Shown one piece after another: positions 1 through 63,596 of a stretch of DNA of 64,000 nt (its first letter is position 1; every line of letters begins with the position of its first letter). Below the pieces are notes generated by a model that was given only the letters and a program-made list of their open reading frames with translations, did not search any database and was not told the DNA's origin. Position numbers and translations under genes: made by a program. The DNA is from Gekko japonicus (Eukaryota). Where the stretch lies: contig NW_015163630.1 of assembly GCF_001447785.1 (NCBI RefSeq), positions 37,272-101,271 of the forward strand, in the 5' to 3' direction.

Positions 1-162
1 GAATGGGTTGATTTCGGTCCCCAGCACCGCGAATGGGTGGAAGAAGGGGATATTCGGGCCCCTTACCTGATCCGTAGGTTCCACAGAAGGTTCCCGGACA
101 AACCGGGAGGTCTCCCGCCCAGCCCGGGAGATCTCCCGCCCAGGCCGGGAGGTGTGTTGTAA
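1..162 (+). CDS. pol: C-terminus of Ty3/Gypsy (chromovirus, sushi-like) pol: chromodomain end; 5' part lies outside the window
   Basis: Frame +1 reads EWVDFGPQHREWVEEGDIRAPYLIRRFHRRFPDKPGGLPPSPGDLPPRPGGVL*, matching the W..(F/Y)GP...W....I.AP.L..FH..FP.KP pattern of chromoviral integrase chromodomains. It is followed by a PPT and an LTR. Confidence 0.85.
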   Translation, partial: EWVDFGPQHREWVEEGDIRAPYLIRRFHRRFPDKPGGLPPSPGDLPPRPGGVL

Positions 163-4769: not shown

Positions 4770-6281
4770 GTAGTTGCCAAGCAGTTCCAGAGTTTTCTGG
4801 ATGACACATCAGCACTGGATCTATTCCAGTCCGGCTTCCACCCTGGCCATGGGATCGTTGCCCTGATCGAGGTGGGTCAGCGCTGTTGTTGTTATTAGAT
4901 CTCACAGCATCCAACAAAGTTACGATCTTCTAACTCACTGCCTCACCAACATGAGAGTTCGTGGGGGAGCCTTACAATGGTTTACCTCATTTCTCCACGG
5001 TTGGGAACAGAGTGTGGTGCTATGGGAGAGGGGGGTCACCTGGGTACCCCCTGATGTGTGGGGTTCCCCAGGGAGCAATCCTCACTCCGATATTATTTAA
5101 CATCTATATGCGCCCCCTCACTCAGCTGGTGCGGAGTTTTGGGCTGGGGTGTCACTAGTAACTATGCTGACACCCAGCTATATCTGTTTTTGGATGGCCA
5201 CCTGGATACCGCTCCTGACAATCTGGCTGAGGGTTTGGAGGCCACGGTGGGGTGATTAAAAAGAGCAAAGTGAGACTGAATCCGACAAAGACAGAAGATC
5301 TGTGGCTGGGGGAGGGCTTTGGGATTGGGGCACAGACTTCCCACTCTTGATGAGGCACCACTGGTACTGGGACCATCCATCAGGAGTCTGGGCGTGACTC
5401 TGGATGCCTCTCTAACTATGGACACCCAGGTCACAAATATTGCCAGGTGGGCATATTTCCATCTCTGCCAAGCTTGGCAACTAGCCCCTTTCCTGTTGCG
5501 CCATGACCTAGCCACTGTAATCCATGCAATGGTCACCTCCAGGCTAACTATTGTAACTCACTCTACACTGGCCTGTCCACGAGACTGACCCAGAAGCTCC
5601 AGCTTGTCCAGAATGTGATGGCACAAATCCTGACTGGAACGCCTCTGACAACACATATACAACCGGTGCTGTGTCAGCTACACAGGCTCCCAGTGGAATA
5701 CTGAGTCAGGTTTGAGATTCTGGTGTTGACCTTCGAAGCCTTGGCCAGTTTGGGACCTGCGTATCTTCAGGACCACCTCCTCTGGTATGTCCCCAGAAGA
5801 GCATTACACTCAGCTGAGAACAATCTACTGGTGGTCCCTGGCCCTAAAGATATCCAGCTATCCTTGACCAGAGCCAGGGCCTTCTTGGTCCTGGCTTTGA
5901 CCTGGTGGAACTCTCTGCCAAATACCACCTGGGCCTTGCAGGACTTAATGAAGTTCCGCAGGGCCTGTAAGGCAGAGATGTTCCACCAGGCCTTTGGTTG
6001 AGGACAGTGACAGCTCCATCATAGCCAGCACCCTCCTCCTCCTCTTCCTCTTTTTTCCTTCATACTTGCTTCAGCCCTCTCCTCACCTGCAAGCAGTCAG
6101 TGATGCAGACCAGAGCAGGGTAGTGAAGAAACTGACGCCATCTGAAATAATGTAGTCATCCTTTTTGGGGTTTTGTTTTTAATTTGTTTTTAATGGTTGT
6201 ACATCGCCTAGTGTCTTATATCGTAGGGAACACGTAATAATAATAATAATAATAATAGTAATAATAATAATAGTAATAATA
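4770..6281 (+). mobile_element. 5'-truncated degenerate L2-type LINE (RT domain to 3' end)
   Basis: LDLFQSGFHPGHG, CGVPQGAILTPILFNIYMRPL, YADTQLY, LGVTLD and WWNSLP motifs with frameshifts; (TAA)n tail at 6235-6281. Confidence 0.85.
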
Positions 6282-9713: not shown

Positions 9714-10259
9714 TGTTGGAATATGTAAGGTCTATCATGCATAGATAAAGAAGATGACAAGAACATCCTGCAGGGGGCAGCAAAGGGAACAACTACTTAG
9801 CATAGTGAGATTAGGGGCTTCCTGCTATTTTCAAATAGTCTCCTTCCTGTCTCCTGATTGGCCCAGTTAGGACTCTTTCCTGCTCCTGCTGAGAACAGGT
9901 TGTTACTGACTTTCTCCTGGCTAGTTAGGAACGATGCTCCCTCTAAGCTGTGGAGTCTTGTGAGCAGAAATTCTACTTTGTGAGCTATTGGCATTAAAGC
10001 TGTGAGCAAACAATTTGGCTACTGTATGAATTAGTTTGCTCTGGAGCCATCCTTCCTGAGCTAAGACAAAAATGTGTGAGCTGAAGGCTAAAAAACTGTG
10101 AGCTAGCTCACACTAACTCAGCTTAGAGGGAACACTGTTTAGAAAGACATCTCTTTCTCTCTCTTCTTTCTTACAAAGTTTGTTCTCTTCTTAATAAACC
10201 GACTTTACTCTTTAAACATCTTGTGCTCCACTTCACTGAGTCTCTACACTCTGCCAAGA
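9714..10259 (+). mobile_element. Solo LTR inserted in a SINE and carrying a nested hAT MITE
   Basis: Ends TGTTGG / CCAAGA (one mismatch); 5-bp TSD GTTCA at 9709-9713 and 10260-10264; AATAAA near 10193; SINE head at 9595-9708 and core GTGAGGATAA resuming after the LTR. Confidence 0.6.
9932..10137 (-). mobile_element. hAT MITE family A, copy 1
   Basis: TIR ..CCCTCTAAGCTG / CAGCTTAGAGGGAACACTG; degenerate TSD GTTAGGAA / TTTAGAAA. Confidence 0.85.
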
Positions 10260-12402: not shown

Positions 12403-12520
12403 TGCCCATCTGATCTGGAGGCACTAACGTCTCATGACTAGTTGACATAAATAGCACACTTCATTTATTTGGAATATTTATAGAGCCTACCTTTCTACTG
12501 ACACAGTCAGGAATCAGGAC

Positions 12521-12725
12521 CAATGCTACCTCTGAGCTGTGGAGTCTTGTGAGCAAAAATTCTACTTAGTGAGCTACTGGCATTAAAGTTGTGAGTGAGC
12601 TGATTTAGCTACTGCATAACTTAGTTTGCTCTGGAGCCCTCCTTCCTGAGCTGAGACAGAAATGTGTGAGCCGGAGGCTAAAAAACTGAGCTAACTCACA
12701 CTAACTCAGCCTAGAGGAAAAACTG
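12521..12725 (-). mobile_element. hAT MITE family A, copy 2
   Basis: Homologous to 9932-10137; TSD ATCAGGAC / GTCAGGAC. Confidence 0.85.
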
Positions 12726-12797
12726 GTCAGGACCCAAGGTGGACAATAACAACAAATGCTATACAACAATAATTATCTATTAAGATAGACATTAAGA

Positions 12798-19644: not shown

Positions 19645-19850
19645 CAGTGTTCCCTCTAAGCTGAGTTAGTGTGAGCTAGCTCACAGTTTTTTAGCCTCTG
19701 GCTCACACATTTTTGTCTTAGCTCAGGAAGGATGGCTCCAGAGCAAACTAATTTATGCAGTAGCCAAATTGTTCACTCACAACTTTAATTCCAGTAGCTC
19801 ACAAAGTAGAATTTTTGCTCACAAGACTCCACAGCTTAGAGGGAACATTG
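19645..19850 (+). mobile_element. hAT MITE family A, copy 3
   Basis: TIRs CAGTGTTCCCTCTAAGCTG / CAGCTTAGAGGGAACATTG; no clear TSD. Confidence 0.85.
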
Positions 19851-23234: not shown

Positions 23235-26200
23235 TTGTTGTTGTTGTTCAGTCGCACAGTCGAGTCCGACTCTTCGCGACCCCATGGACGAGCTCTCTCC
23301 AGGCCTTCCGGTCTTCTGCCGTCCTCTGAAGTTGGCTCAACTTCATGTTCGTTGCATCGATGACACTGTCTAACCATCTCATCCTTTGCCGTCCCCGTCT
23401 TCTTTGACCTTCAATCTTTCCAAGCATCAGGGTCTTCTCCAGTGAGTGCTCCCTTCTCATTTGGTGGCCAAAGTATTTGAGCTTCAGTTTCATTATCTGG
23501 CCTTCCAGGGAACAGTCAGGGTTGATTTCTTTGAGGATTGACTGATTTGTTCTTCTTGCAGTCCAAGGGACTCTCAAGAGTCTCCTCCAGCACCATAGTT
23601 CAAAAGAATCTATTCTTCGGCGCTCGGCCTTCCTTATAGTCCAGCTCTCGCAGCCATACATGACTACTGGGAATACCATTGCTTTGACCATGCGGACTTT
23701 TGTTGGCAGGGTGATGTCTCTACTTTTTATCATGCTGTTTAGGTTCGCCATCGCTTTCCTCCCAAGGAGCAGGCGTCTTTTAATTTCATGGCTGCAGTCA
23801 CAGTCTGCGGTGATCTGGGATCCCAGGAACGTGAAGTCTGTCACTACTTCCACAGCTTCCCCTTCTATTTGCCAAGGAGTGATGGGGCCGGATGCCATGA
23901 TCTTAGTTTTTTTGATGTTGAGCTTCAAGCCCACTTTTGCGCTCTCCTCTTTTACTCTGAGCAAGAGGTTCTTTAGATCCTCTTCACTTTCAGCCATTAG
24001 AGTGGTATCATCTGCATATCTGAGGTTGTTGATCTTTTCCCCAGCAATCTTAATTCCCGCTTGTGATTCATCCAGGCCAGCATTTCGCATGATGTACTCT
24101 GCATATATATTAAATAAGCAAGGTGACAGTATACATCCTTGTCGTACTCCTTTTCCTATGCTGAACCAATCAGTTGTTCCGTATCCGGTTCTAACTGTCG
24201 CTTCTTGGCCCTTATACAGGTTTCTCAAGAGACATGTGAGGTGGTCTGGTACTCCCATCTCTTTAAGGACCTGCCATAGTTTGTTGTGATCCACACAGTC
24301 AAAGGCTTTAGCATAGTCAATGAAGCAGAAGTAGATATTTTTCTGGTACTCTCTTGCTTTCTCCATAATCCAGCGAATGTTGGCAATATGATCTCTCGTT
24401 CCTCTACCTCTTCGAAACCCAGCTTGTACTTCTGGTAGTTCTCTATCCACGTACTGTTGAAGCCTAGCTTGTAGGATCTTGAGCATGACCTTGCTAGCGT
24501 GTGATATGAGTGCAATTGTGCGATAGTTTGAACATTCCTTGGCATTGCCCTTCTTTGGGATTGGAATGTATACTGATCTTTTCCAATCCTGTGGCCACTG
24601 TTGCGTTTTCCAAATTTGCTGGCAAATGGAGTGCAGAACTTTAACAGCATCATCTTCTAAGACTTTGAATAGCTCAGCTGGAATACCATCACCTCCACTA
24701 GCTTTGTTGTTAGTAATGCTTTCTAAGGCCCATTTAACTTCACATTCCAGGATGTCTGGCTCAAGGTCAGTGATTATACCGTCGTGTTTGTCAAGGACAT
24801 TGAGGTCTTTCTTGTATAGTTCTTCTGTGTATTCTTGCCATCTTTTCCTAATCTCTTCTGCTTCTGTTAGGTCCCTACCGTTTTTGTCCTTTATCATGGC
24901 CAGCTTTGCATGGAACGCTCCCTTGATTTCTCCAATTTTCTTGAAGAGATCTCTAGTCCTTCCCATTCTATTGTTTTCTTCTATTACTTTGCACTGTTCA
25001 TTCAGGAAGGCCTCCTTATCTCTCCTTGCTGTTCTCTGGAAATCTGCGTTCAGTTGGGTAAATCTTTCCTTTTCGCCTTTGCCTTTCGCTTTCCTTCTTT
25101 CCTCTGCTATTTGTAAAGCCTCATCAGAAAGCCACTTTGCTTTCTTACATTTCTTTTTCTTTGGGATGGTGGTGATTGCTGCCTCCTGTACGATGTCACG
25201 AACCTCTGTCCATAGTTCTTCAGGCACTCTATCTATCAAATCCAGACCCTTGAATCTATTCTTCACCTCTACTGTATATTCATCAGGGATGCGATCTAGG
25301 TCAAACCTGAATGGCCTCGTGGTTTTCCCAATTTTCTTCAGTTTAAGTCTGAATTTTGCAATGAGTAGCTCATGATCTGAACCACAGTCAGCTCCAGGTC
25401 TTGTTTTTACTGACTGGATAGAGCTTCTCCATCTTTGACTGCAAATTATATAGTCAATCTGATTTCGGTGTTGCCCATCTGGTGATGTCCATGTGTAGAG
25501 TCGCCTCTTAGGTTGTTGGAAAAGGGTGTTCGCTATGACCAGTGTGTTCTCTTGACAAAACTCTGTTAACCTTTGCCCTGCTTCATTTTGCTTTCCAAGG
25601 CCAAACTTGTCTGTTATTCCAGTTACCTTTTGACTTCCTACTTTAGCATTCCAGTCCCCTATGATGATGAGGACATCATTTTTTGGTGTTAGTTCTAGGA
25701 GGTGTTGTAGGTCTTCATAGAACCGGTCCACTTCAGCCTCTTCTGCATCAGTGGTTGGGGCATAGACTTGGATTACTGTGATGTTGAATGGTTTGCCTTG
25801 GAATCGGACAGAAATCATTCTGTCATTTTTGAGATTGTATCCCAGTACTGCCTTTTGCACTCTCTTGTTGACTATAAAGGCCACACCATTTTTTCTACGA
25901 GATTCCTGGCCACAGTAGTAGATATAATGGTCTTCTGAGTTAAATTCGCCCATTCCTGTCCACTTTAGTTCACTGATTCCTAGGATATCGATGTTCAGTC
26001 TTGCCATCTCATTTTTGACCACGTCAAGCTTACCTTGATTCATAGATCTTACATTCCAGGTTCCTATGCAGTATTGTTCTTTGCAGCATCGGACTTTCCT
26101 TTCACCATCAGACACATCCACAACTGAGCGTCCTTTCGGCTTTGGCCCAGCCGCTTCACTCTTTCTGGGGTTACTTGTACTTGTCCTCTGCTCTTCCTCA

Positions 26201-26449
26201 GTAGCATATTGGACACCTTCCGACCTGAGGGGCTCATCTTCCGGCGTCATATCTTTTAGCCTTTTGATACTGTCCATGGGGTTTTCTTGGCAAAAATACT
26301 GGAGTGGGTTGCCATTTCCTTCTCCAGGTGGATCACGCTTGGTCTGAGTTCTCTGCTGTGGCCTGTCCGTCTTGGGTGGCCCTTCACGGCATAGCCCACA
26401 GCTTCATTGAACTGCGCAAGCCCCCTCGCCACGACAAGGCAGTGATCCA
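23235..26449 (-). mobile_element. Full-length BovB (RTE clade) LINE
   Basis: 3.2 kb; (CAA)n 3' tail; perfect 11-bp TSD GACATCTGTGG at 23224-23234 and 26450-26460; BovB-like 5' motif GGAGAAGGAAATGGCAACCCACTCCAGTAT. Confidence 0.97.
23248..26277 (-). CDS. BovB ORF: APE endonuclease plus reverse transcriptase, 1009 aa, uninterrupted
   Basis: IGTWNVRS, GISE, GDWNA, IDY and SDH endonuclease motifs; GVRQGCILSP and YADD RT motifs; RRRGRQRMRW C-terminus. Confidence 0.97.
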   Translation of the reverse strand: MDSIKRLKDMTPEDEPLRSEGVQYATEEEQRTSTSNPRKSEAAGPKPKGRSVVDVSDGERKVRCCKEQYCIGTWNVRSMNQGKLDVVKNEMARLNIDILGISELKWTGMGEFNSEDHYIYYCGQESRRKNGVAFIVNKRVQKAVLGYNLKNDRMISVRFQGKPFNITVIQVYAPTTDAEEAEVDRFYEDLQHLLELTPKNDVLIIIGDWNAKVGSQKVTGITDKFGLGKQNEAGQRLTEFCQENTLVIANTLFQQPKRRLYTWTSPDGQHRNQIDYIICSQRWRSSIQSVKTRPGADCGSDHELLIAKFRLKLKKIGKTTRPFRFDLDRIPDEYTVEVKNRFKGLDLIDRVPEELWTEVRDIVQEAAITTIPKKKKCKKAKWLSDEALQIAEERRKAKGKGEKERFTQLNADFQRTARRDKEAFLNEQCKVIEENNRMGRTRDLFKKIGEIKGAFHAKLAMIKDKNGRDLTEAEEIRKRWQEYTEELYKKDLNVLDKHDGIITDLEPDILECEVKWALESITNNKASGGDGIPAELFKVLEDDAVKVLHSICQQIWKTQQWPQDWKRSVYIPIPKKGNAKECSNYRTIALISHASKVMLKILQARLQQYVDRELPEVQAGFRRGRGTRDHIANIRWIMEKAREYQKNIYFCFIDYAKAFDCVDHNKLWQVLKEMGVPDHLTCLLRNLYKGQEATVRTGYGTTDWFSIGKGVRQGCILSPCLFNIYAEYIMRNAGLDESQAGIKIAGEKINNLRYADDTTLMAESEEDLKNLLLRVKEESAKVGLKLNIKKTKIMASGPITPWQIEGEAVEVVTDFTFLGSQITADCDCSHEIKRRLLLGRKAMANLNSMIKSRDITLPTKVRMVKAMVFPVVMYGCESWTIRKAERRRIDSFELWCWRRLLRVPWTARRTNQSILKEINPDCSLEGQIMKLKLKYFGHQMRREHSLEKTLMLGKIEGQRRRGRQRMRWLDSVIDATNMKLSQLQRTAEDRKAWRELVHGVAKSRTRLCD

Positions 26450-52539: not shown

Positions 52540-53230
52540 ACATAGAATCATAGAATGTTAGAGTTGGAAGGGACCTTGCAGGTCATCTAGTCCAACCCCC
52601 TGCACTCTGCAGGAACATAGCCAAAAGATAGCCCTACAACATACCCAAAAGATGGTCATCCAGCCTCCGCTTGAAAACGTCCAGCAGAGGAGCATCCACC
52701 ACCTCCCGAGGCAGACTGTTCCACTGCTCAACCACTCTTACAGTTAGGAGGTTTTTCCTGATATTTAGCCGGTAACAACTCCCTTGTAATGTCCACCCAT
52801 TAGATCTAGTCCGGAACAAGAGAGAATAGATCTGCTCCGTCTCCTACATGACAGCCCTTCAAATACTTGAAGACTGCAATCATGTCCCCTCTAAGCCTTC
52901 TCTTTCCCAGACTAAACATACCCAACTCTTTCAGCCTTTCCTCGTAAGACTTGGATTCAAACCCTCTCACCATCCTGGTTGCCCTCTTCTGGACACGCTC
53001 GAGCTTGTCAACATCCTTCCTAAAATGTGGTGCCCAAAACTGGACACAGTACTCCAGGTGGGGCCTGACCATAGCAGAATAGAGCAGAACTACCACCTCC
53101 CTTGATCTGGACACAATGCTTCTGTTTATGCATCCTAAGATTGCATTAGCTTTCTTCACAGCCACATCACACTGCAGGCTCATGTTTAGCTTGTGATCAA
53201 CCAGAACACCCAGATCCCTTTCACATGTGC
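52540..53230 (-). mobile_element. CR1 LINE 3' fragment
   Basis: [10 protein letters not shown]...[15 protein letters not shown]...[12 protein letters not shown]...RRLRGDMI; 3' tail (ATTCTATG)n. Confidence 0.92.
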
Positions 53231-54436: not shown

Positions 54437-55172
54437 AGCCTTGTTCTGCTGCTTCAGTCTGACACTACTGAATCTATGCACACACACAAAAAACCCCTCA
54501 CCCTCAACACAATCATCCTGCGCAATCACATCAACATCAGTTTTTCAATGTTTTATCAGTGTGCACAGAGCCATCTGGAGCACAGAGAAGAAATACTCAT
54601 GAGCAGTGTTCCCTCTAAGCTGAGTTAGTGTGAGCTAGCTCATAGTTTTTTAGCCTCCGGCTCACACATTTTTTTTTATAAAGTTTTATTTCCCTCTCCT
54701 AAAAAGGAGAGAATTTTGCTTTTACAATAGAAAATTAGGGAGGGGATATAGAGGGATAAAGAAAAGTGTTGAGTGATGTTAAGTATTAGTAAATTAAACT
54801 TTTTTAAAAAATTAAAGTTATAGTCTAAGCTTCTTCTGTGGTTAGGCAATCTTCTTTTCTTCTCTATTTTTCAAAACCAAATAGTTAATATGTTAGTAAT
54901 GTCCCTTTGGGGTTAGTATTACTTTTATAGCATAATCCAAAATAGTTAGTTTTGGGGGCCTTTCCCTTTTTTGTCCCTTAAGTTGTACTTTGTGCCAGTC
55001 GCTCCTTTGTCTTCCTCATCCTTCACCTCTCCCTCAGAACTGCTGTCCTCTCCGCTACCTCCCTACATCCACTTGGTGAGTTCTTTTTTTTTTTTAACAG
55101 TTTTATTTAAGTTTTTTTCACAAATATACAACCATTACATTGATATTTTAACATGTTATCTGTGTAAGTCTA

Positions 55173-56453
55173 TTACAGATCATTATGCTCTATCCATTTG
55201 TAAAAATCTGCCCATCTTTCTTTAAACACCTTATCATCTTTACCTGACAAAATGAGTGTTAATTTATCCATTTCTGCTACTTCCATTAATTTCTCTACTA
55301 TTTCCTTTCTTTTAGGTAGCTTTTCTTGCTTCCAGTATTTGGCAATCAAAATTCTAGCCGCTGTGAGCATATATGTTAATATATAATAATTATTCCCTTT
55401 ATATTCATTCGGGATAATATTTAACAAGTAAGTCTCCGGATTTAATTTTAGATTTAAATGCAGCATATCCTTTATCAAGTCATTCACACTTTTCCAAAAC
55501 TTATACATTTTTTCACAATTCCACCACATGTGGAGGAAAGTCCCTACGTTGTTTTTACATCTCCAGCAGTTTTTATTAGCAGTTTTATATGCTTTAGATA
55601 ACTTTTCAGGGGTCCAGTACCATCTATGGAATATCTTAAATATGTTTTCCTTAAATGCTACTGCCCGCATTAATTTCATTGATTTCCAAACTTTTGACCA
55701 ATCCTCGATTTGTATGGTTTTTCCCAAGTCCTTCATCCAAAGAATCATAACATTCTTTATATTTTCGCTAAAAAGATAGTCCTCAAGAAGGAACAAATAT
55801 GTTTTTTGGATAAGTTTGTCGTTTGTTGACAACCATATTTTGTCCAGATCTGTTTGGGTGTTTACAAATTCCCCATTTTTGTCTTTGTTATATCTATCTT
55901 GGACTTGCATCTTCTCCCACCATGTTAAATGGATATTTTTGTCTATTAATCTTTCTAGAGGTCTTAGTTTATTTTCTTCATCTAATAATACATCATATGA
56001 TATAGCTTTTTCTTTTGACATTAATTTTGTATTAATAAATGCCTCCAGGGGGGATACCCATCTTGGTGTTTTGTTGTAGAATCTATATTTCATCTCTTTC
56101 CACACCTTAATTAGTGCAGCTCTAATAATATGGTTATGAAAATTGGAGTGTACTTTATCTTTTTCATACCATAGGTACGCGTGCCACCCCATGTAGAGGT
56201 CGTGGCCTTCTAAATGGAGTGTTCTCCAATTTTTTAACTGGATCCAATCTTTAATCCACACCAATGCCGCAGCTTGGAAATATAGTTGCCAATTCGGAAG
56301 GCCCATTCCACCTCTCTCTTTTTTATCTTGTAGTATCTTTAATTTTATACGGGCTCTCTTTGGGTGCCAGATGAAGGACCTGACTATTTTATCCATATCC
56401 AGAAAGTACTGCTTTTTCTTCAAGATTGGGAGATTTTGTGCTAAAAATAAAAT
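55173..56453 (-). pseudogene. L1 ORF2 C-terminal part (disconnected)
   Basis: ILFLAQNLPILKKKQYF...GGMGLPN...CWRC(x8)HMWWNC zinc knuckle; out of frame with the N-terminal part. Confidence 0.9.
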
Positions 56454-56572
56454 CGACGCTGGTTCTTGGTGTAAGTCATTACAAGCGGTTTGGCCAATCC
56501 TATGCCAAACGTTGGATGCGGCAAAGGCCGCTTACAAACTGCAGGCTGACAGAGGTCGGGTGGTGGGTTGGG
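56454..56572 (+). other. Captured Ty3/Gypsy pol (post-integrase-core) fragment replacing part of L1 ORF2
   Basis: GC/CpG-rich island inside AT-rich ORF2. The plus strand reads DAGSWCKSLQAVWPILCQTLDAAKAAYKLQADRGRVVGWD, resembling the Gypsy integrase L..W...L..A...YK..AD..R helix. Confidence 0.65.
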
Positions 56573-58923
56573 ATACTGTTTCTGTTTGTTAGTGTTACAC
56601 CTAGATACTTTACTCTCTTTACTATTTGTAGGTTAGATAGCTTTTGTATTTCGTTTTCTACATTTTGGGGGCAGTTTTTGGTTAAAATCTTTGTCTTTTT
56701 ATAATTAATTTTGAGACCAGCCGCACCTCCATATTCCTCTATTTCCTTTAATAGGTTTCTAACGGTTGTTGTCGGGTTTTCTAATATGAAGACTAAGTCA
56801 TCTGCAAAAGCTTGTAGTTTATACTCTTCATCTTTGATTTTCAATCCTTTTATAGATGGATTTTTTCTAATATTGTCATTTAAGGATTCAAGTATGAAGA
56901 TGAATAGTAGTGGTGATAGCGGGCACCCTTGCCTAGTGCCTTTCTGGATCTCTATTTTTCTAGTTATCTCACCGTTTACTACAATGCTTGCTTGTTGTTT
57001 CTTATATATTGTTTTTATCATATTCAGAAAATCCTGTCCACATTCCCACGTCTTCAATTTTAATTTTAGAAAGTCCCATGACACGTTATCAAATGCTTTT
57101 TCAGCATCTAGAAAAATTAACGCCATTTGTTTCTCAGGGTGTTCTTCATAATATTCAATTATGTTAATGACTGTTCTTATGTTATTTTTCATCTGTCTTT
57201 TTGGTAGGAAGCCCGCTTGGTCTTGATGTATCTCTTGTTGTAACACTTTTTTAAATCTTGTAGCTACAATACTCGCAAAGATTTTATAGTCTGCATTAAG
57301 TAAAGAGATTGGTCTATAATTTTGTATCTCTTTTTCGTTTGAGTCCGGCTTGTGGATCAATGATATAGTGGCATCCTCCCATGATTCTGGCATAATTGCC
57401 TCCTTGGGTATCTTTTGGAGAACTTCTTTAAAAGGTATAAGAAGTTGGTCTTCAAACTTTTTATACACTTCTACCGGAATACCATCTGGGCCTGCTGCTT
57501 TGTTTATTTTTTGCTTTTTTATTGCCTCTGTTATTTCATATGGTGCTATTTGGTCATTTAATATTTTTTTTTGATCTTCATTGAATTTTTTTTTATTATG
57601 TTGCATCAAGTATTTACTTAAATCTTGTTGATTTTGTTTCTCTTGGTGATACAATTTCTCATAAAAAAGTGTCACTATATCCTTAATTTCATCCGTCCTG
57701 TATTTAAGCTCTTTCTTTTCATCTATTAGAGCAAGGATAGTTCTTTTTGCCCTTTCTTTTTTCAATTTATAAGCTAACCACCTTGTCGGCTTATTTGCAT
57801 TTTCAAAGAAATTTTGCTTTGTGTATTCTATTTTTCTAGCTATTTCTTGTGACAATAAGAGGTTCATTTTGTGATGGAGTAATTTCAGGTGTATTCTTGT
57901 TGTTTCTATTTGTGTTAATTTTTTCAATTTGTCTTCTTCTAATTTTATATTATTCTCAACCTTCCTAATTGTTTCCCTTCTCCGTTTCTTTCTCCATGCG
58001 TCTTGGTTTATGAACCAACCTCTTAAGAAGGCTTTGAATGCATCCCATATAACCTGTATTGGTGTTTCTCTAGAAGTATTGACTTTAAAGAATTCTTTTA
58101 TTTCTCTATTGGTATCAATTATGAACTTTTTATCTCTTAACAAGTTTTTATTTATATTCCATCTCCCGCTTTGCTTCTTTAACTGTAATGATATTTGTAT
58201 TGGACTATGATCTGCGTAAATGTTCGTCAAAATTTCTGCCTCATTAAGGTCTTTTATCATTGTCATGGAGATCCAAGCCATGTCGATTCTCGACCATGAT
58301 TTGTGTCTAGCGGAAAAATAGGTATAGTCCTTTTTATCTACGTTTCTCACTCTCCATGCGTCTATCAAGTTGTATTCTTCTGCTATATTTAGAAAAATCT
58401 TTGGTAACAACATTCCTGATTTGGCAGATTTGTTCTCTTTTGTTCGGTCCAATTTTGGATCAAGAACTGCATTATAGTCGCCTATAATACAGATGTAATC
58501 AGTTTCTTTCTTCTCCAAAATTTTTTTGATTTCTTGGTAAAAATTTTCTTGGGTTTGGTTTGGTGCATAGATGTTAATTATAAGTATTTCTTTCCCATTA
58601 CTCATAATTGTTATTGCTATTATCCTTCCATCTGTAGATTTGTATAACAATTTGGGATGTAAGTACTCTTTGGAGTATATTACCACTCCTCTTTTCTTAA
58701 CACTGTCTGATGCGGTAAATTCAATCCCCAATTTTTTACGTTTTAGAAATTTTTCATCTTGCTTTTTTATGTGTGTTTCCTGAAGGCAGATTAAATCTGC
58801 TTTTGTTTTTGCTAATTGATGGAAGGTTCTATTTCTTTTTTGTGGTCCGTTTAGTCCATTTATGTTTATTGATAAGATCTTGAGTTTCTTATTTGTCATT
58901 GTATTTGTTTTTTGTTCCAGCAT
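56573..58923 (-). pseudogene. L1 ORF2 N-terminal part: APE endonuclease plus RT, terminating early in the foreign insert
   Basis: ILSININGL, CLQET, GDYNAVLD, SRID, YRPISLLN, LDAEKAFD, GTRQGCPLSP, FADD and KYLG motifs. Confidence 0.95.
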
Positions 58924-60034
58924 TTTGATTTCTATACTGGAATCTAGTTTGCATTTGGGACTGCATTCTTTCTACTGCTCTACGTCTTTGTCTTTTAGTA
59001 TCTTTTTCTTTCTCTCTCTCTCTTTCTTCGTTTCTTTCTTGGCTTAATTCTCTCTGTGATGCTTCTGTTTTATCTTCTTGTTCTTTAGCGCATTCTCCCT
59101 CTTCTTCATCCTCCTCTTCTTCTCCTTCTTCCCTTTGCCACCCCAGATTTTCGCCTTCATTATCAAGGAAATTTTCTAATTTAAAAATTGAGTTTATTCG
59201 GTATCGTTTACCTTTATATGAGAAAAGGACTCCTTCTGGGATTAACCATCTGAATGTAATTTCATTTTCTTTCAGTAAATCTGTTAAAATATTGTAGTTA
59301 AATCTTTTCTCCCTGACTCTCCAAGGCACATCTTTGAGTATCCTAATTTCCTTTTCATTTATAACTACTTTAGCTTCATTTGCCGCTTTCAATATTTTAT
59401 TTCTGGTTTCTTTTTTATAGAATTTTACGTGGGCCTCTCTGGGTAGCTTTTTTCTCTTGGCATAGGCTGAATTTCTTCTAAACACTGTTTCTATTTCTCC
59501 ATAAATATTATCTTTAGTGTCAATATTTAATTGCTCTGCAAAGGATCCTGCTATAACTTCTTTTAAACTGTCTTCAATTTCTTCTGGGATGTTCTGACAT
59601 CTAATTATAAATTCCGCTCTTTCCATTTCAAAATTTATAACAGTTTCCTCTAGTTTCTCATTTTTTACTTTCATTTCTTGCATTTCTGCATCCAACATTT
59701 GCGTTTTTTCTACCAATTTGTTAGAGGTTTTTGCAATTTTAGTTATTTCTTTTTTATTTTCAACCATCTGCTTCTTAATTTCCTCCGTTTCCGTTTTAAT
59801 TTGGTTTGCAATCTCTTCCATCCTATCACTTATGGGAGTTATTTCTTTCTTAATTAGGTTTGGTAAAGTTACTTCCATGTTCTGTTGGAACATTAATGCC
59901 AAACTTTCTTGTATATATTGTTTAAGTTCTTTCATTGATTGTTGAGAAATATTAGAGGTTAATTGGGATATATTTCCTGCCTGTCCTGGGGAAGGTATGG
60001 ACCCTTTTCTGTTACTTCCTGCTCCTGATGCCAT
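58889..60034 (-). CDS. L1 ORF1p (coiled coil, RRM-like region, CTD, acidic tail), 381 aa, intact
   Basis: Heptad-rich N-half, IRCQNIPE, PRE..VKF, IRILKD and FRWLIP motifs; directly upstream of ORF2. Confidence 0.9.
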   Translation of the reverse strand: MASGAGSNRKGSIPSPGQAGNISQLTSNISQQSMKELKQYIQESLALMFQQNMEVTLPNLIKKEITPISDRMEEIANQIKTETEEIKKQMVENKKEITKIAKTSNKLVEKTQMLDAEMQEMKVKNEKLEETVINFEMERAEFIIRCQNIPEEIEDSLKEVIAGSFAEQLNIDTKDNIYGEIETVFRRNSAYAKRKKLPREAHVKFYKKETRNKILKAANEAKVVINEKEIRILKDVPWRVREKRFNYNILTDLLKENEITFRWLIPEGVLFSYKGKRYRINSIFKLENFLDNEGENLGWQREEGEEEEDEEEGECAKEQEDKTEASQRELSQERNEEREREKEKDTKRQRRRAVERMQSQMQTRFQYRNQNAGTKNKYNDK

Positions 60035-61254: not shown

Positions 61255-62084
61255 TCTCGATTTAAGTTTGTTATTCTCATCTAGTAGTGTGTCATATGTT
61301 ATTCTACTGTGTTTTGCCATAAGTGTTGGCTTCACAAAAGCTTCCATTGATGAGACCCATCTAGGAATTTTTCTATAATATCTCTGTTTAATTGGGTCCC
61401 AAACTTTTACTAATGCTCCTCATATTATATGGTTCTGGAAATTGGAATGGATCTTATCCTTCTCGTACCAAACGTACGAGTGCCATCCCATATATAGGTC
61501 GTGCCCTTCCAACTTTAAACATCTTAAATCTTCCAACTTAATCCAATCTTTAATCCAACAAAGTGCAGCAGCCTGATAGTAAAACTTCCAATTCGGGACA
61601 CCAAAAACCCCTCTTTCTTTTTTCTCCTGTAGTAATTTTAATTTTATCCTTGCTCTTTTTGTATGCCAAATAAATTGCCTGGTTACTTTATCCAACTCTG
61701 TAAAGAAATTGTTTCTCTTGAGGACTGGAATATTCTGAGCTAAAAATAGAAATTTTGGCAATATGTTCATCTTAATCGTGGCAGTTTTCCCCATAAGAGA
61801 TAATTGCAGTTCTTTCCATTTGGCTAAATCTCTTTTAATCTCCCCCAATAATTTGTTATAGATTATTGTTTCTATTTGACAATGTAATCCCCAGATATCT
61901 GGCTTTTTCCACAATCTTCATATCTGATATTTTTTTAATTTCTTGAATCGTATCCTGAGAACAATTTTTAGTTAACAGTTTGGTTTTCTTAATATTAACT
62001 TTAAGTCCAGCTACTACTCCATATTCTCTTATTAAATCTAGTAAGTGTATCATTGAGACTTGAAGATTTTCCATTATAAACAAG
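61255..62084 (-). pseudogene. Internal ORF2 fragment of a second, diverged L1
   Basis: LFIMEN...EYG.VAGLKVN...RYLGITL...IKMNILPKFLFLAQ...LEGHDLYMGWH...YDTLLDENNKL; paralogous to the inner L1; has a frameshift and a premature stop. Confidence 0.9.
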
Positions 62085-63394
62085 CTTCGCCCCCCCTCTT
62101 TTCTCTTAAAAAAGTCTCTTCTTCCATTGGGGGGGGAAGCCTCCACCTCCCTTCCAATTTTCCCGGGGGAACGAACGCGTTTATAACGCCACTTCAAATT
62201 CGATCACCAACTCACAGTTCATCGCTTTTTCGCTTTTGTTCCGACTTTGCTTTAACGCTCCGACTTTGCTTTAACGCGTTGCTAGTCCCCATGCAGGGCA
62301 TGTCGCAGCCAGGGCCATTTGGGGCAGAGGGGGAGCCTCAATTCCCGACCTTCTGGCTGGCAAGAGGCTTTTTCCCTTAAGCGCTCCCTAGTTTGGAGCC
62401 CTTACCCTAGGGCTCCTTAGGATCTCCGCTTACGTGGCCCCCCGCCAGACTGCATGTGGGCGATCCGGCTCCGGAAGCGCCCCGAGAGCAGGTCGCCATT
62501 TGCGCCGCCCTGGCCGGAAGTCCGGCTCACACATTTTTGTCTTGGCTCAGGAAGGAGGGCTCCAGAGCAAACGAATTTATGCAGGAGCTAATTCTCTCGC
62601 TCACAACTTTAACGCCAGTAGCTCACAAAGTAGAATTTTTGCTCATGAGACTCCACAGCTTAGAGGGAACATTGCTCATGAGGAGTTACCATGTTAGTCT
62701 ATGGCAACCAAAACAACTATCTTGTGTCATTATTAATTATAGCATAAGCTTTTGTGACCCAGAACCCACTTCATTACACTCAGAAGGCATAAAAGTGTGT
62801 GTTCAGGGCATTACCACGATTCTCCAGAACAATTACACAAATCTTAGGTAATACAAAACACACACACCAAAAAAGATCACATAGTATTTTGTGTTTGGCT
62901 GCTTACCATAATCAGCAATGAGCATCTTCTTTGATTCTCCAAAAATCCCAGGCAGTGGCCTGGGAATGCAGCTCCTGGCTGCCACAAGACAGGTGTAGGG
63001 CCCAGCAGAGTTGCAGTTAAGGCTCTCTCCTTCCCCTTCCCTCCCTCCTTTGTGGTGGTGGGGCCCTTTCCCCCCTCTGCAAGTAGGATGGCTGGGGGAC
63101 TTTGTTCAAGGTCCCATAGAATTGGGCACCTTGGTCCAATTCACTTGAAACTTGGGGTAGGGGTGTCTTAGATTAGTGGATGAATATGTTCTTTGCACAT
63201 TTGGTGCCATTATATTTTTAAAAACAGCTACCCCAGATCCTCACATTTGTTCCCCACTGAAAATAATAGTCCCCCAAAAACATGGATTTTAAACCTGAAC
63301 TGGTAATGTCCTACCTGAAAACCAGCAATCGAGATAAGCCCCCCCCATATTCCACACAAGTAAAAGCAGATCTTTAGGTAGGGGTAGATGTCAT

Positions 63395-63596
63395 CAATGT
63401 TCCCTCTAAGCTGTGGAGTCTTGCGAGCAAAATTTCTACTTTGTGAGCTACTGGCATTAAATTTGTGAGTAATTCAGCTACTGCATTAATTAGTTTGCTC
63501 TGGAGCCATCCTTCCTGAGCTAAGACAAAAATGTGTGAGCCGGATGCTAAAAAACTGTGAGCTAGCTCACACTAACTCAGCTTAGAGGGAACACTG
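63395..63596 (-). mobile_element. hAT MITE family A, copy 5
   Basis: TIRs present; perfect TSD GATGTCAT. Confidence 0.9.

Follow-up and report, generated by a model that had tools for sequence, protein, structure and literature searches.

How does a short stretch of unrelated DNA come to replace an almost equally long part of an L1 retrotransposon, where did it come from, and at what stage in the life of the element was it put there? This question was raised by a full-length L1 on the minus strand of a 64,000-nt stretch of the Gekko japonicus genome, which is called the window here. The second open reading frame (ORF2) of this L1 is interrupted by foreign DNA. Our analysis makes it likely that the interruption is a real, one-off templated patch of ~119 bp, taken from the integrase gene (linker helix) of a young LTR-retrotransposon family of ~100 copies, most likely Ty3/Gypsy. 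The reading frames of the recipient L1 and the patch were located as follows.

58889-60034, minus strand: L1 ORF1, intact, 381 aa.
55173-58923, minus strand: L1 ORF2, total span, with its start at 58923 and its stop at 55173, interrupted by the patch.
56573-58923, minus strand: N-terminal part of ORF2 (endonuclease and reverse transcriptase), open from the ATG to the patch.
55173-56453, minus strand: C-terminal part of ORF2, open to the stop, in a frame shifted against that of the N-terminal part.
56454-56572, plus strand, antisense to the L1: foreign patch with the sense of an integrase-like coding repeat, recognised by composition, read depth and coding frame.
56500-56502, minus strand: TAG inside the patch, the first in-frame stop for the frame of the ORF2 N-terminal part.

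The N-terminal part of ORF2 matched the Pfam families Exo_endo_phos (1.1e-09) and, over its complete length, RVT_1 (1.9e-40). Its homologues in the word search showed 49% identity for the Varanus L1 ORF2 over the full N-terminal part and ~41% for Anolis, and the ORF2 homologue P0001 matched the solved human ORF2p at 4e-178. The element belongs to LINE-1 by its ORF2 with an APE-type endonuclease and a reverse transcriptase, its upstream ORF1, its poly(A) tail and its TSD. The upstream part of ORF2 ended ...YLGVTLTNRNSI and gave way to unrelated sequence, after which the frame resumed as ILFLAQNLPILKKKQYF; the downstream part began ILFLAQNLPILKK. ORF1 and the remaining ORF2 were open, so that the patch was the sole ORF-level lesion. 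As both ORFs were otherwise open and the element was flanked by a perfect 18-bp TSD, the L1 is young; it is otherwise intact and recently inserted. Read from its frames, the patched copy would be unable to make a working reverse transcriptase, as its ORF2p would be truncated and the frame beyond the patch shifted.

The lost segment was measured in an alignment of the two ORF2 parts, joined by X at the break, with eight full-length L1 ORF2 proteins (Varanus, Anolis, horse, and others). It amounted to 42 codons (126 bp), made up of 39-40 gap columns and the 3 X, and its length was nearly constant in all eight relatives. With the Varanus homologue aligned to human ORF2p (8sxt), the lost codons corresponded to approximately residues 779-820, directly after the RVT_1 match and the palm of the reverse transcriptase. 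These residues of ORF2p (~779-820) would form the thumb in the published structures. In place of the 126 bp stood the 119 bp of the patch (56454-56572), which resulted in the frameshift.

The limits of the patch fell at 56450-56454 and at 56571-56574, giving an extent of ~117-122 bp. They are uncertain by a few bases, because L1 homology was detectable in other L1 copies up to 56449-56452, where their alignment ended, and from 56578, where it resumed. One short sequence is placed across the second limit.

56572-56574: GAT (ATC on the L1 strand), candidate junction microhomology, fitting both the donor family and the likely L1 sequence.

Contigs of the donor family remained aligned through 56574, and L1B, a paralogous L1 fragment described below, has ...AATAATC at the corresponding place; the three nucleotides GAT may represent a microhomology at the junction. 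An inverted 11-mer was also seen between the patch and the L1 just past the junction (56464-56474 and 56595-56605, 10/11 match). It is probably meaningless, with ~0.3 such pairs expected by chance according to our estimate, though it could represent a fold-back microhomology. Reading of the junction sequences showed no TSD, A/T run or poly(A) signal at the ends of the patch. A patch lacking TSD and poly(A) was therefore copied or ligated in, and not transposed.

The composition of the patch was foreign to the L1. It showed 55.5% GC and 7 CpG, compared with 33% GC for the L1, and none of the 4507 windows of 119 bp in the L1 ORFs attained either value (maxima 46% GC and 5 CpG). The first-pass annotation had described about 40 missing codons, their near length-neutral replacement by about 120 bp of CpG-rich foreign DNA with no TSD, an added stop and frameshift that inactivate ORF2, and no further visible lesion in the L1. 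All of this was borne out by the alignment, the composition and the junction sequences.

Several sources for the patch were rejected. For an inverted or diverged L1 origin, none of the three minus-strand frames resembled the missing L1 peptide, and the L1's own GC-rich 5'UTR showed no match to the patch. A donor within the window was also rejected, as blastn-short and tblastn searches of the patch against all 64 kb resulted in 11-mers only. For a small-RNA origin in the style of U6/L1, Rfam at E<=10 and ARAGORN were blank in the patch, and Rfam was blank over the whole inserted unit that contains the L1.

The donor was approached through two contig sets and ~1% of two independent raw WGS runs, aligned to 55554-57353 at 80% likeness and with an estimated coverage of ~1x. 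Over the patch, which spans two 60-bp bins, read depth in the two runs was 64/80 and 110/127; in the adjoining L1 bins it was 15/25 and 14/11. The patch depth was thus 4-10 times that of the L1 flanks, and this excess identifies the patch as part of a repeat with roughly 100 copies, which is more abundant than this part of the L1. The family majority differed from the patch in having G for A at 56481 (TTA>TTG) and A for C at 56557 (CGG>AGG); only in the plus frame from 56440 are both changes synonymous, two sites being a small sample. Some reads of the majority type were otherwise identical to the patch, and some copies stood one letter away from it over a whole read. As such reads carried no further difference, the donor family is young.

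The contigs that left the L1 alignment gave the continuation of the donor. A diverged contig leaving at 56537 showed YKTQADKGR against YKLQADRGR in the patch, with 14/22 positions in register; this register holds only if the loose letters start one place past the stated position, which fixed our reading convention. Five contigs leaving at 56574 continued in frame as LQPGDL(V), and only seven residues of the following domain were visible in them. The donor family reads ...AAYKLQADRGRVVGWD LQPGDLV, and at the join of patch and continuation …KLQADRGRVVGWD is followed directly by LQPGDL. A helix ending in K.QADR.R with PGD.V some ten residues on would correspond to the linker of a Ty3/Gypsy integrase and the first strand of its SH3-like domain, and the motif spacing presumably agrees with that of vertebrate Gypsy integrases. 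The frame and the continuation support, indirectly, a reading as the linker helix of a Ty3/Gypsy-type integrase together with the first residues of its SH3-like C-terminal domain.

A region of the same L1 with its own depth pattern lies outside the patch. At 57114-57233 the read depth of the raw runs rose to 220-330, with sharp loose ends at 57130 and 57179. Within the reverse transcriptase-coding region, a core of 50 bp is common to a repeat family much more abundant than the rest of the L1.

Homology searches returned no significant similarity of the patch to integrase families or known Gypsy pol in Pfam, phmmer, the word search or the PDB. Pfam gave nothing at E<=10, and the word search with the patch peptide gave no candidate. 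With the 42-residue plus-strand peptide, phmmer against 1.84 billion representatives found only two repeat proteins, P0059 (LRR repeats) and P0060 (DUF11 repeats), and both were rejected as their scores were sums of weak repeat matches. A thioredoxin-like match in the PDB (E 0.6) was attributed to chance. The same applies to the IMG/VR scan, in which three phage contigs had the word KLQADRGR in common by chance. Three of the six frames were open across the patch, and openness by itself was therefore uninformative. In the protein-atlas feature search the nearest named clusters carried SH3_Tf2-1 (twice, in the best two) and MLVIN_C, with scores of 0.83-0.85, below the reliability line of the tool. 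A linker helix of 42 aa may be too short and too variable to score. The first-pass annotation had read the plus strand of the patch as a Gypsy integrase helix. The ~100-copy coding repeat, its frame and the LQPGDL continuation speak for this reading, and a significant integrase match did not appear.

Taken as a whole, an origin from an LTR-retrotransposon integrase, antisense to the L1 and most probably of the Gypsy type, is well favoured. We infer the family name from the short motif, from language-model leads below the reliability line and from the general features of Gypsy integrases. Another coding repeat is an unlikely donor, be it an endogenous retrovirus, a BEL/Pao element, another integrase-bearing element or an unrelated multi-copy gene, and it could be combined with any of the mechanisms discussed below. 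The Gypsy integrase match never reached significance, the motif K.QADR.R...PGD.V is short, and MLVIN_C, which the atlas also returned, is a retroviral integrase C-terminus; all three would suit such a donor. Against it stand the best two named atlas clusters, both with SH3_Tf2-1, and the motif spacing, which would agree with that of vertebrate Gypsy integrases.

A nearby donor had also been proposed, at the very start of the window.

1-162, plus strand: open frame ending ...EWVEEGDIRAPYLIRRFHRRFPDKPGG..., entering from upstream of the window.

The first-pass annotation had labelled the element ending at base 162 a chromovirus and suggested it as the source of the patch. This frame resembles the second half of a chromodomain at the C-terminus of pol. 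For bases 1-159, Pfam showed no Chromo match and the word search found no relatives, and the chromovirus label is putative. As donor of the patch, a copy 56 kb away is disfavoured because the genome holds ~100 copies, several of them within one or two letters of the patch. That the window-start element lies on the same strand is a 50% coincidence.

Other coding sequences were noted elsewhere in the window. An uninterrupted ORF of 1009 aa runs over 23248-26277 on the minus strand. ORF fragments at 52806-53183 (minus strand) and 5319-5588 (plus strand) resemble, by eye, the C-terminal regions of CR1/L2-like LINE ORFs.

The timing of the patch depends on how the L1 itself arrived, and its insertion was delimited by the following features.

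54656-54673: 18-bp TSD, 3' copy, exact.
62521-62538: 18-bp TSD, 5' copy, exact.
61265-62100, minus strand: 5'-truncated fragment of a different L1 family (L1B), retaining the segment lost from the main L1.

A composite of 7847 bp (7.85 kb) between the two TSD copies contains the L1. In four uninterrupted copies of the target repeat (19645-19850, 12514-12732, 9934-10137, and 63395-63596) the 18 bp were present once, between the left and right flanks, and the composite was therefore inserted as one unit. Its parts, in the order of the L1 strand, are ~420 bp of GC-rich DNA (62100-62520), the L1B fragment, the full-length L1 with an A-run, and ~400 bp (54683-55083) ending in AATAAA and a second A-run; the A-runs lie at 55084-55095 and 54674-54682. 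A read-through transcript of the source locus, with 5' and 3' transduction, may underlie the composite, or it may be a chimera of several templates. The first-pass annotation had pointed to a paralogous copy that retains the missing segment. The segment is indeed present, in the paralogue peptide at 61420-61914 on the minus strand, but the paralogue, L1B, belongs to another L1 family, with 70% nucleotide identity to the main L1. L1B showed a frameshift of its own and a short deletion near NRNNNL/YNKLL. That it spans the exact ORF2 region patched in the main L1 is probably a coincidence.

The current data fit both a template detour during the retrotransposition of the L1 and a break repair after it. 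We tentatively place the detour first, giving it somewhat less than an even chance; its timing and the detour itself are inferred, and its rank above later break repair is argued from rates. The patch would have been made while the L1 was being copied into the genome. A polymerase working on the L1 RNA or cDNA intermediate would have left its template and copied ~119 nt of a transcript of the Gypsy family, antisense if this took place in first-strand synthesis and sense if in second-strand synthesis. At a short microhomology (GAT/ATC) it would then have rejoined the L1 template 126 nt further on. With the cis-preference of L1, one would expect a working ORF2p to have been encoded by the copied RNA. 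By rate reasoning, a structural accident is far more likely in any one retrotransposition event than in one generation at a resident locus of 6 kb. The detour is preferred on these two grounds and because a very young element shows no ORF-level lesion other than the patch.

The near-equal lengths (119 vs 126 bp) are either a coincidence of the order of 5-10% or the result of a steric constraint acting on a detour with return to its original template. One form of such a constraint, which we regard as doubtful, is an in-and-out detour in which the arms of a bubble are anchored at both ends and two stiff hybrid duplexes lie side by side, so that near-equal lengths would follow.

LINE reverse transcriptases are documented to make double and multiple template jumps (PMC2104539), and template switching was described for L1 chimeras (10.1101/2025.02.02.635956). 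The patched L1 resembles these template-switch chimeras (U6/L1, Alu/L1, and 28S/L1, together with tripartite retrogenes; 10.1101/2025.02.02.635956, PMC2104539) in that a foreign piece is joined without a TSD of its own and the whole stands under a single TSD, and more than one template jump per event is documented there. The known chimeras also count against the detour. Chimeras of the U6/L1 type have a truncated L1 preceded on its 5' side by the foreign RNA copy in like orientation, with no return to the L1 template, whereas the patch here is internal to a full-length L1 that is collinear on both sides of it, so the locus falls outside that type. It differs further in its foreign template, the coding region of an LTR-retrotransposon in antisense.

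Break repair after integration is a less probable account. Here a DSB in the resident L1 would have lost ~126 bp, and end joining would have captured cDNA, RNA-templated DNA or genomic DNA of the Gypsy family. The lack of TSD and poly(A) and the possible 3-nt microhomology at 56572-56574 are in line with it, the abundant young donor family would have kept cDNA or homologous copies on hand, and either orientation is equally likely under this model. Class-2 templated insertions measure 73-414 bp, without TSD and with microhomology and microdeletion at their junctions (Onozawa & Aplan, PMC5110952), and the patch falls within this experimental size range. As in class-2 TSI, TSIP and filler DNA (PMC5110952), the patch is templated from elsewhere, is about 100-400 bp long and has no TSD or poly(A), with loss of target and possible microhomology; a retroelement-derived template is plausible in both. 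Unlike class-2 TSI, the target loss here, 126 bp, is nearly equal to the gain; it also exceeds a microdeletion, which speaks against break repair. The recipient is an L1 that had only just inserted, and the event may therefore be part of retrotransposition itself; it is the template family, not a single donor copy, that is known. The rates also tell against break repair, as a rare structural event would have to precede any ordinary stop or frameshift in an L1 that shows no other ORF-level damage.

Two further systems bear on capture and copying at breaks. Moore and Haber, and Teng et al., both in 1996, reportedly observed cDNA of the yeast LTR-retrotransposon Ty1 captured at chromosomal breaks. 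As there, an LTR-retrotransposon fragment serves here as a patch without integrase-type ends or TSD; the yeast events were experimental, whereas the present one occurred in a vertebrate germline, inside another retrotransposon, with cDNA as only a possible origin. In FoSTeS/MMBIR, which is replicative template switching, a short templated stretch likewise replaces one of similar length with microhomology at the joins, and a direct template on the same chromosome would fit the window-start element. Among ~100 copies, the nearest template has no demonstrated advantage.

It is improbable that the patch is older than the insertion. In that case it arose in the source L1, and its defective RNA, together with transduced flanks, was mobilised in trans by the proteins of another L1. 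The 7.85-kb composite under one TSD, with extra sequence on both sides of the L1, does have the look of a read-through transcript from a source locus. Given the cis-preference of L1, however, a defective copy is seldom mobilised in trans, and the rest of both ORFs is intact. Only 32 of ~2200 reads per run were at least 99% alike over the L1, and a family of patched copies was not apparent. An assembly or polishing artefact, with 119 bp misplaced into a collapsed or mis-polished L1 copy, is more improbable still: both partners are repeats, a faulty local re-assembly could yield a near length-neutral replacement, and no bridging read or contig over either junction was found among the pieces listed from the two contig sets and ~1% of the two raw runs, but the replacement is collinear and clean on both sides, two letters of the patch are not those of the family majority, the 64 kb around it are free of gaps, and the two runs contained 0.77 and 0.67 of the sampled words of 56000-57000, junction words not necessarily included.

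The locus holds one dead L1 copy with an unusual scar, a one-off accident and not a new kind of system. No effect on the host is evident. As a natural case of templated patching between two classes of retrotransposon in a vertebrate germline it is clean, and the youth of both partners allows the joins to be read at base level. It would become more valuable if further near length-neutral patches were found in the genome. A source copy that placed the patch at the time of retrotransposition would show that the L1 machinery had made an internal in-and-out template switch. If length-matched detours recur, retroelements could exchange short internal modules, and these would leave a signature distinct from that of 5'-end chimeras.
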